Notes under the pieces: model-generated
What the model was told of the DNA's origin: nothing
Database searches by the model: none
What the model saw: the letters and a program-made list of their open reading frames with translations, nothing else
DNA from: Chara braunii
Lineage: Eukaryota; Plantae; Charophyceae
Assembly (NCBI GenBank): GCA_003427395.1
Contig: BFEA01000025.1
Span: forward strand, 4,008,090 to 4,060,700
Direction of reading: 5' to 3'
DNA length: 52,611 nt
Position numbers and translations under genes: made by a program
Shown: positions 16,680 through 41,650 of the stretch, piece after piece
How positions within the stretch are numbered: the stretch's first letter is position 1
How the letters are laid out: the number at the start of each line of letters is the position of its first letter

Positions 16680-17243
16680 TTATGGCACAAATGTGATGCA
16701 TATGGCCGCTCTATGTCCAGACCCCCAAAATTGTTTGGAGGGATGGGCAAAGTCGTGCGTTTCCAGAAAAGGAGATGCTTGGCATAGTGGTACTAATGTG
16801 GACCTGGTGGGTGGGGTAAATGGGTTATCCATGGGTCTTTTAGGCATGTAGTGGGAATTCAAACACTGGCCTCCTGAATGCCACTTGTGTGCCGTACCAA
16901 CTGAGGTACTCGGCTCTCGTGCTCGGTGGCCTCCATTCGATTTTGTGGGCATAAAGGGGGGAGAAGAAAGATCAAAAGACTCGAAAACTTTGTGCCCAGA
17001 AACAGAATGCACTAATCTCATGTATTGTGTGGAAACCAGTTTAGAGTATATCTACGAGCAGATTAATGAGGACATGCAACCTTCTTGCCCCATATATAAT
17101 GTACGGTCATTATATCTGTATTTAGACCGAAAGATGGCCCAAATACAGATATAATGACCGTACGTTGTATTCGGGGGAAGAAGGTAGGTGTTAATGAAGA
17201 CACGCATCCCAACCAAACCCAACCCCACCCCACCCCATCAAAG

Positions 17244-33357: not shown

Positions 33358-33649
33358 TATTAGATCAATGGTGATGATGACGTGGATGCGCTTGAGTGGA
33401 TAGGGATTAGCCGTAGATTATATCGTAGATCGATACTTGTCTCTGAGCAGATGTTGTCACACGTAGAACGGATATTTGTTCTTAGTCGGTATACGGTGAA
33501 GAGGCACGTGGCCCCTTCACGTAGAATCGCAGGGGGATTTTACTTTGACGTACCTGGACGCAATTTCGGCGTTTTTTTAACCGAAAAACCGTCAGGTCTT
33601 ACAGGTGGGAACCCGGTAAGCCCTGTCGATTTCGCTTCAAAAAATGCCG

Positions 33650-33947
33650 AAATTTAATATCATGTGGCCCGATGGACCACGCAGGGACATCCGTTAAAAT
33701 TGGAACGATACAGAGAAGGGTAATTAGCAAATTGCCCCTGCGCAAGGATGACACGCATAAATCGAGAAATGGTCCAAATTAAAAAAAAAAAAAAACTGAT
33801 CAGAACAGAAACTACACTTAAATTAATTTTCTGGGGGTACGGTGGGGTCATATGGGTAGGCTTGCCTACTCGACCCCTCTGAGTTGCCTCTGTATTGCAC
33901 TGAAGCAGAGCGTGGCTCGCCCCATTAAAAAAAAAAGAAAAAAAGAA
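33650..33947 (+). pseudogene. U2: U2 snRNA processed pseudogene with an inverted 5' portion
   Basis: Sense 3' half at 33818-33924 (Sm-like AATTTTCTG, stem III with CTTG loop, stem IV with ATTGCACT loop) plus an A-tail at 33927-33947. Antisense pieces at 33793-33819 (AAGTGTAGTTTCTGTTCTGATCAGTTT, branch-point recognition region) and 33650-33683 (stem IIb, TGCGTGGTCCATCGGGCCACATGATATTAAATTT). TSD-like repeat at 33639-33654 / 33941-33956. Confidence 0.85.
33684..33795 (+). pseudogene. U6: U6 snRNA processed pseudogene (5'-truncated, poly(A)-tailed)
   Basis: GGGACATCCGTTAAAATTGGAACGATACAGAGAAG...CCCCTGCGCAAGGATGACACGCATAAATCGAGAAATGGTCCAAATT matches plant U6. The first ~9 nt are missing, an A15 run replaces the oligo-T terminator, and there are small insertions around the AGC triad. 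Confidence 0.95.
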
Positions 33948-34949
33948 GCTGAAATTGCGGCCAGGTACGTTAGAGTTCTCAATGCCCAAAGGGGTATGTT
34001 GAATTGAATCGATCCAAAAAAAAAAAGAAAAAAAGGTGTTATGATGTTATCGAATGCATCATTGGGAGCGACTGCTTCTGTGCTTATTTTTTTCCAGACA
34101 AGTTCCAGCCCTGAATGCTGACCTGTAGTAGTAATTCGTACGGTGTGTTTTGTTGTTCATTAAAAAAAAACAATCAGTGAGAAATTATCGTATATTGCTT
34201 GGATCTCCCGCCTCTGCTTTCCTAAGTCGATCTCCCTCGCTCCCAGTCTTTGTTCTCCCTCTCTCCCTCTCTCCCTCTCTTTGTTCTCCCTCCCCCTCTT
34301 CTGGGATGCGTAGGGATGGCGATTCCGCGTCTGGACGTGTTAGTAGTAATGCCTATGCGTGGTATTCGGAGAGACCAGAGCTGACAACAGCTAAGGGTAT
34401 ACGCACACTCGCACGTTCTGGGATGTATAGGGCGGCACTTGCGACCACATTCAGTGCACAAATTCCCTAGTTTAACTATGGTTTACGTAAACCACTTCCC
34501 CCACCGTTTACCAGGACCGAAGAGGGAGAGAGGTTTACCCATGCCATACTCACAGTGAGATTGTGCACCGAATCTGGTCATAAATGCTGTCAGGATATCT
34601 CCCGAATAGGAGTGACCATATAGTGGATAATTTGTTCAAAAATAGTGCGAGCCAACCAGGGGGATGGGAGGAAACGAGTAGGGAAGGGGGGGGGGAGGGG
34701 GGCGGAGACGGGAGGGCAAGGGGCAGAGGCTGGCTGGACCCCCTCCATACCCATGTATATGGTGGGAATCAAGAAAACCGAACCCTCTGGCCATTATCAA
34801 AGGGCTACTGAACAGAGCCCCATGGAGGATTTAGCGAAAGAAAGCATGGGTGAGGGGGGCTCGAGAATGGAATTGAATTGAATTGAATTGAAACAGCGAG
34901 GCCAATGATTGGAAGGTCGACAAAGGAAAAAAGATGAAAAAAAAAAAAG

Positions 34950-40510: not shown

Positions 40511-41023
40511 TGGGCATACTGAATTATGACAATTTGAACTGATTTCCATATCAAGGAATCCTTCTTTGGTGGTGACGATGGAACTGGAAATTGTGGTCCA
40601 TCGTGCTATCTACGGATACCATTATGTACTGGATCCACTAGGGGGGGGGGGGGGGGGGGGGGGTCAGTAGGAAATATGCCTATGTTCATAATCTAGTGGT
40701 ACACGAACATGAAAACACTGCCTGGGTGCAGAACCTGGTGGTACGTCAACATGCCGAGAAACTCGAAACACTTCGGCCACCTTGGCGGATCAAGCGTGGC
40801 AGAGCCCAATGAGCCTTTTTCACACAGATGAGAGAGCCTGCAGTTATTTACAAATCCTCGGATCAAGGCTGGCTACTTTGTCAGTTTGTGTGTTTCGTCG
40901 TTGCGCAGGGGGCCATGCAGATCATCTTCGTGTCGTTGTTGTTGTTGTTGTTGTTTTTGTTTTTGTTGTTTGTTTGCTTGTGCAGGGGGCACTGAAATAT
41001 TCTCTGTATTGTTTCAATTTTAA

Positions 41024-41164
41024 CAGATGTGCAAAAGGACCGAAGCGATCTACTTTCCAGACAAGTCGTATAAACAGAATAACAGGCCATACCAACTGTA
41101 GTCAAATCAACGCGTTTATACGACTGTCTGGAAAGTAGATCGCTTCGGTCCTTTTGCACATCTG
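41024..41164. mobile_element. 141-bp hairpin element (MITE-like) flanked by TTAA
   Basis: 51-52-bp arms identical except one indel, a 38-nt spacer, and TTAA at 41020-41023 and 41165-41168. Confidence 0.75.
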
Positions 41165-41650
41165 TTAATACGAGGAGTTCTTAATGACCTCCTGGGTAAT
41201 GGTCCCAGTATTGTGATCTCCTGGTTGTATTGTGAGGCTCCCTAGTCCCAGTGTTTTTTTTGGAATGAGAAGTTCTTAATGACCTGTTTAAAAGGAAAGG
41301 AACAACTGCGGTAAAGACTTTTATTGTTTTCCCCTTTTTTATTCGCCCTCTTTTTTTTCCCCTCTTTTTTTTCCCCTCTTTTTTTTCCCCTCTTTTTTTC
41401 CTCCTCTTTTACTTCCCCTCTTTTATTTCCCCTCTTTTATTTCCCCTCTTCCCCCCCCCCCCTGAAGTATACAAAGTAATGGAGAACAAAGCCGGAGAGT
41501 CGCTTCGTTCAACGTAAAATTCTTTTGTTCTCTTGGAGCCATGTGTTGTTAAATATGCAGCAATGATTTTAGCTGGTCTCCATCAACCTGTGTCTTCTTC
41601 CCTTCCCTTGTCGTATTTTTTACCGTGTGACCCTGTAGGTTTCGGTGGGC

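Follow-up and report, generated by a model that had tools for sequence, protein, structure and literature searches.

A U6 snRNA retrocopy inside a 5'-inverted U2 retrocopy inside a palindromic element of Chara braunii: the probable fossil of three successive insertions

On contig BFEA01000025.1 of Chara braunii a copy of U6 snRNA lies inside a copy of U2 snRNA, which in turn lies inside a short palindromic element. Does such a nest of two spliceosomal RNAs record a coupled or snRNA-directed retroposition, as an earlier note on this DNA had suggested, or is a more familiar process sufficient? We addressed this question in a window of 52,611 nucleotides (52.6 kb), by which we mean the whole stretch of DNA that was analysed, with positions counted from its first letter; within it, the region 33542-33976 was read directly and scanned with Rfam models. 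Our results favor the view that the locus is probably a non-functional fossil of three successive insertions, and ordinary LINE-type reverse transcription accounts for the layout without any link between U2 and U6.

From left to right the locus comprises the palindromic element with its left terminal inverted repeat (TIR), a first target-site duplication (TSD1), antisense U2 nt 68-99, a sense U6 with A15, antisense U2 nt 30-56, sense U2 nt 93-195, an A-rich tail, TSD2 and the remainder of the right TIR (Table 1). The DNA itself shows the pieces with their orientations and breakpoints, their tails, the duplication of the target and a T-run/purine sequence at each of the two presumed nick sites. 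All elements that the earlier note had listed for 33548-33970 were found, each within a few bases of where they had been placed, and the mapped pieces and breakpoints back the nesting order proposed there, in which the palindromic element came first, the 5'-inverted U2 retrocopy second and the U6 retrocopy last.

Table 1. Features of the nested locus, in positions of the 52.6-kb window.
Feature	Positions	Strand	Basis or remark
Left terminal inverted repeat	33542..33578	+	37 nt, 84% complementary to 33940-33976
Element interior (inner arms and ~4-nt loop)	33579..33638	+	Self-complementarity; hairpin fold of the reconstructed element
TSD1 (original inner right arm; 3' end AATT the presumed top-strand primer)	33639..33654	+	13/16 to TSD2
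Antisense U2 nt 68-99 (stem-loop IIb and following AUAUUAAAUU)	33650..33681	-	29/32 to best plant-type U2 reference
CA, 2 bases	33682..33683	.	Mutated U2 nt 66-67, U6, or untemplated
U6 snRNA retrocopy, 5'-truncated by ~11 nt, ending AAATT	33684..33780	+	RF00026
U6 A-tail, A15 (12-15 nt)	33781..33795	+	Last three A equally the complement of U2 UUU 54-56
Antisense U2 nt 30-56 (branch-point recognition region, 5' arm of stem IIa)	33793..33819	-	25/27
Sense U2 nt 93-195 (Sm site, stem-loops III and IV, 3' end)	33818..33923	+	RF00004; 79/109
U2 3' end (ATT) and A-rich tail	33924..33940	+	Sequence reading
TSD2 (second copy of inner right arm)	33941..33956	+	Inside the 37-nt arm complementary to the left TIR
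Right terminal inverted repeat, outer end	33957..33976	+	Complementarity to left arm

The identity of the two RNAs follows from model scans and from alignment to fetched genes. Run at the locus, the RF00026 and RF00004 check that had been proposed beforehand returned U6 at 67.4 bits (+) and U2 at 35.4 bits (+), together with an antisense U2 match of 25/27 (-). The alignment of the sense half of U2 covers the Sm site with stem-loops III and IV, and it skips the 5' half of the model; the antisense match appeared when 33784-33826 was scanned alone, corresponds to RF00004 model positions 29-55, and gives the same count against fetched references. The stem-loop IIb piece on its own had no Rfam match, as expected of a stem-loop that is variable, and was therefore assigned through fetched U2 genes. 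These were obtained with a pattern consisting of the branch-point region plus ATGATATTAAA 30-60 nt downstream, which gave 119 metagenome stretches and 76 plant-type U2 genes, and the U2 pieces were placed on them by local alignment; the 11-mer of the pattern was derived from the locus itself, so that the surrounding matches and the spacing are the only independent evidence. The sense half agrees with the best of the 76 references at 79 of 109 positions, and the references among themselves average 77% (range 61-100%). The metagenome contigs contained no exact match to a 23-mer of the stem IIb presumed for Chara. The hairpin of stem-loop IIb folds more stably when read from the minus strand (-11.0 versus -7.2 kcal/mol), because its G.U pair becomes a C.A mismatch on the plus strand. 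Judged by these alignments, the U2 sequence is of plant type.

Across the intervening U6 the U2 sequence runs on save for nt 57-65/67 (9-11 nt), which are missing from the locus, as are nt 1-29; its stem-loop IIb piece overlaps TSD1 by 4-5 nt. Split, partly inverted and without nt 1-29 and 57-67, the copy does not have the makings of a functional U2 gene. Its tail is an A10 G A7 tract from 33927 onwards. The 19-mer A10 G A7 G of this tail (33927-33945) recurs exactly 90 bp downstream, at 34017-34035, where it ends another A-tailed stretch immediately beyond the right end of the element; the recurrence may be a coincidence of low-complexity sequence, or a further short retrocopy may lie there.

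The U6 match to RF00026 exceeds the gathering score of 44 and extends over 33666-33783 (+; E 6e-15). The first 18 nt of that alignment are forced onto the U2 hairpin, and the certain U6 part is 33684-33780. Within 33718-33735 the copy carries a GGTA insertion right after ACAGAGAAG and, within the otherwise invariant AUUAGCAUGGCCCC, AATT where a U is expected, on account of which we regard it as decayed; either change could be a post-insertion mutation or a feature of a variant source gene. A T-run terminator and an upstream promoter context were looked for by reading the sequence around the copy, and neither is present. With its truncation and its indels in invariant positions, the copy is unlike a functional U6 gene. 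Set against plant U6, its sequence too is of plant type.

The outermost layer of the nest is a palindromic element of 121-133 nt. Both TIRs survive, as had been claimed: they are 37 nt each and 84% complementary, and the window contains the core 20-mer nowhere else, 100 shuffles having produced 0 chance matches to it. The stretch 33562-33654 is self-complementary by itself (74% over 95 nt), and the reconstructed empty element (33655-33956 removed, 133 nt) folds into a single hairpin of -77.3 kcal/mol, which corresponds to z = -11.8 against shuffles (-32.6 +/- 3.8 kcal/mol). A short non-coding sequence with long terminal inverted repeats and a single-hairpin fold resembles a MITE, and foreign sequence enclosed by intact ends resembles a Pack-MITE. 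It differs from the former in having no further copy in the 52.6-kb window (pattern search and blastn matched the locus alone), no flanking host TSD evident on direct reading, and no demonstrable superfamily signature, and from the latter in that its interior arrived by retroposition and not by gene-fragment capture, and in that the composite is not known to have moved to any other site. "MITE" is consequently a structural description here, not a statement of family membership.

Within this element the pair of TSDs previously placed at 33639-33654 and 33941-33956 was recovered with 13/16 identity, one of the three differences being CpG to TpG. Taken alone this identity is weak support, insofar as the A-run makes up part of the matching stretch, and 13/16 is reached by 0.18% of random 16-mer pairs in this low-complexity, repeat-rich window. 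We therefore rest the argument on a three-way homology with the left arm. Both copies align to one and the same stretch of that arm; TSD1 pairs with it at 88%, and fits it better than TSD2 does (folds of -77.3 versus -71.2). Since both are homologous to the same left-arm stretch, the corresponding stretch of the right arm is present twice, and the duplication is established.

Twin priming of L1 is said to have been described by Ostertag and Kazazian in 2001, and the U2 part of the locus bears its full signature, in agreement with the reading in the earlier note. Both U2 arms (antisense nt 30-99, sense nt 93-195) are enclosed by a single pair of TSDs. Moreover, the antisense arm lacks both a T-run and an A-tail, and it starts exactly at the match of the target's 3' AATT to U2, the AATT (AAATT in some U2 variants) at 33650-33654 being common to TSD1 and the U2 complement, which is the overlap that had been pointed out before. 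The arms overlap by 7 nt (U2 nt 93-99), and at the inversion junction they share the 2 nt TT at 33818-33819, which when alone would be weak evidence.

A number of observations suggest that a LINE-type machinery produced the two retrocopies. The U6 and U2 matches stop at RNA ends or truncation points and have no gene context, both carry a 3' A-rich tail, and the sequence at their insertion points is consistent with nicks of the T-rich/purine kind, at TTTTTT/G for U2 and CAGTTT/AA for U6. The events differ in their target sites: U2 has a TSD of 16 nt that matches at 13/16 and is corroborated by the symmetry of the palindrome, and U6 has none and has lost 9-11 nt of its target. Among the 30 ORFs of the 52.6-kb window we recognised no LINE ORF, and we accordingly infer the enzyme from these signatures.

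We propose the following sequence of events, in which the LINE-type enzyme, the order of U2 before U6 and the independence of the U6 event are all suggested by this single locus. A palindromic, MITE-like element of 121-133 bp would already have been present, and an A-tailed U2 snRNA would have been copied into its right arm by a LINE-type endonuclease and reverse transcriptase, through target-primed reverse transcription. A bottom-strand nick at TTTTTT/G, placed there because the A-tail adjoins the A-run that opens TSD2, would have freed a T-run that primed on the A-tail, so that U2 was copied from its 3' end to nt 93. The top strand would have been nicked 16 nt downstream, after ...GAAATT, and this GAAATT end, paired with an AAUU inside U2 (about nt 94-97), could have served as primer for a second cDNA, synthesised from nt 99 towards the 5' end of U2 as far as nt 30. 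The two cDNAs would then have been joined at the 2-nt overlap, leaving a 5'-inverted U2 between 16-bp TSDs.

The U6 part looks like a separate and later insertion. Its A-run adjoins CTGATCAG, and its final three A complement U2 UUU 54-56; from this contact between the A-tail and the TTT of U2 nt 54-56 we infer a nick at TTT/AA, the classic L1-type nick site. An A-tailed, 5'-truncated U6 snRNA would thus have been inserted by a target-primed event of its own, following a nick at CAGTTT/AATATC, in the loop of stem-loop IIa, on the strand that carries the U2 sense sequence, with 9-11 bp of target lost and no TSD made. The landing of U6 in loop IIa had been recognised before, with a loss of about 9 nt and no TSD, and it is borne out at the measured loss of 9-11 nt. 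A TSD is the usual hallmark of target-primed insertion, and its absence counts against this model of the U6 event. L1 integration is known to cause small target deletions in a minority of cases.

Other histories could have led to the same arrangement. If twin priming had played no part, a 5'-truncated sense U2 and a 3'-truncated antisense U2 would have been inserted independently and come to abut by chance, for which the high density of retrocopies offers some ground. However, both arms lie inside a single TSD pair, the antisense arm has neither a tail nor a TSD of its own and begins at the second-strand nick, 16 nt from the first, with AATT microhomology, and the break at U2 nt 93-99 is common to both arms, so that we consider two independent U2 insertions decidedly unlikely. 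A composite template, that is, a U2 pseudogene elsewhere that had received an antisense U6 retrocopy, was transcribed and was then twin-primed here, would by our reasoning yield an identical final layout with no local U6 insertion. Such a history is unlikely as well, since it demands transcription and A-tailing of a disrupted pseudogene of ~300 nt and adds one more step that explains nothing further, and no second copy of the composite exists within the window. A snap-back (self-primed) inversion was rejected, as the two arms cover different parts of U2, and so was a single event with template switches into and out of U6 during second-strand synthesis, as it needs two internal switches plus a skip of 9-11 nt.

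The question of a link between U2 and U6 comes down to the U6 insertion. The two RNAs, paired in the spliceosome, might have been reverse-transcribed together, or U6 might have been guided to U2 sequence; in mammals, L1 RNPs are associated with U6 more than with any other RNA (PMC4476161). Against this, the U6 copy has an A-tail of its own and a TTT/AA site for a DNA nick, and had it been acquired by a template switch while the inverted arm was being made, it would be antisense, whereas it is sense, on the plus strand. The junctions are at U2 nt 56/57 and 66-68, in the loop and stem of IIa, positions that lie outside the U2/U6 helix I, II and III regions. Moreover, about 8 or more chance nestings are expected per ~50 Mb, in a rough estimate that takes ~2.5 U6 per 52.6 kb and lets each U2 copy offer a target of 170 bp, over 970 windows; in our window we count a single U2 locus and two to three copies of U6. 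The earlier note had called the nesting unlikely by chance and a hint of coupled or snRNA-directed retroposition, and this claim is not supported in view of the tail, nick site, sense orientation and non-pairing position of U6; we regard such coupling as highly improbable. That U2 and U6 retrocopies are associated beyond their density, through recruitment of U2/U6 RNPs to LINE complexes or through a preferred TTT/AA loop in U2, seems to us very unlikely; if it were true, the locus would be the product of one biased process. Short repeated elements are difficult to assemble, and reads from different snRNA retrocopies could have been joined by the assembler, but such an artefact would not be expected to produce matching TSDs, flanking complementary TIR halves, continuity of U2 across U6 and microhomology at every junction, and its probability appears to be extremely small.

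Under the reading of three successive insertions, the locus can be compared with several known systems. Classes of processed snRNA pseudogenes were reportedly set out by Denison and Weiner. With these classes, and with groups II-III of Doucet et al., the locus shares dead, mature U2 and U6 copies with A-tails, the lack of promoter or terminator, T-rich/purine nick sites, and TSDs at the U2 copy; it differs from them in that its U6 has a small target deletion instead of a TSD and sits inside another snRNA pseudogene. Twin priming on snRNAs is not new in itself: internal top-strand priming with junction complementarity is documented for human U1, U2, U5 and U6 chimeras with L1 (PMC4476161), and twin priming has also been invoked for antisense small-RNA/L1 chimeras (PMC13174262). 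As in twin-primed L1 and in the snRNA/L1 chimeras (Doucet et al. 2015, PMC4476161), inverted 5' and sense 3' segments stand between one pair of TSDs, and, again as in mammalian L1, target and RNA share microhomology where internal priming began, the segments overlap slightly at the breakpoint, and an A-tail adjoins the A-rich start of the TSD. What is unusual is that a single snRNA of ~195 nt, U2, supplied both arms, with no part contributed by L1, and that the host belongs to the green lineage and not to the mammals.

A physical joint between U6 and another retro-copied RNA is also found in U6/L1 and other chimeric U6 retrogenes, attributed to template switching and RtcB ligation (PMC6789731, PMC13174262). 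In those chimeras U6 is full-length and stands at the 5' end, has the orientation of its partner, is fused to it directly without a tail, and shares its TSD; in contrast, the U6 of our locus is 5'-truncated, A12-15 tailed, opposite in orientation to the flanking U2, and interrupts it. The locus is thus not a template-switch chimera of the U6/L1 type.

If our reading is correct, the locus documents base by base how a LINE-type integration took place in a non-mammalian genome: both nick sites, the priming microhomology and the target deletion are all kept within one 430-bp stretch, and twin priming would be able to act on a template as short as an snRNA. Such a record could be used as a teaching or calibration example for the annotation of snRNA retrocopies. 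It points to neither a new mechanism nor a function.

The surroundings of the locus look gene-poor and repeat-rich: none of the 30 ORFs of at least 130 aa in the window matched a Pfam family above cut-off, and the window contains no tRNA genes. At 40863-41168 lies a decayed minus-strand U6 copy in two pieces (32 and 23.9 bits) with a (CAA)n/(CAAA)n tract between them. An inverted repeat with perfectly matching 44-nt arms, at 41020-41063 and 41125-41168 and 61 nt apart, takes in U6 nt about 5-30 together with 16 nt of flanking sequence upstream, and looks like a young palindromic duplication on an old U6 copy; it also gives rise to spurious MIR393/MIR5048 matches. Many sub-threshold matches to mir-297, mir-466, mir-3149 and mir-1277 fall on CA/CATA-type simple repeats at 9100-11200 and 17080-17190, and these sub-threshold miRNA-family matches are most likely artefacts of repeat composition.
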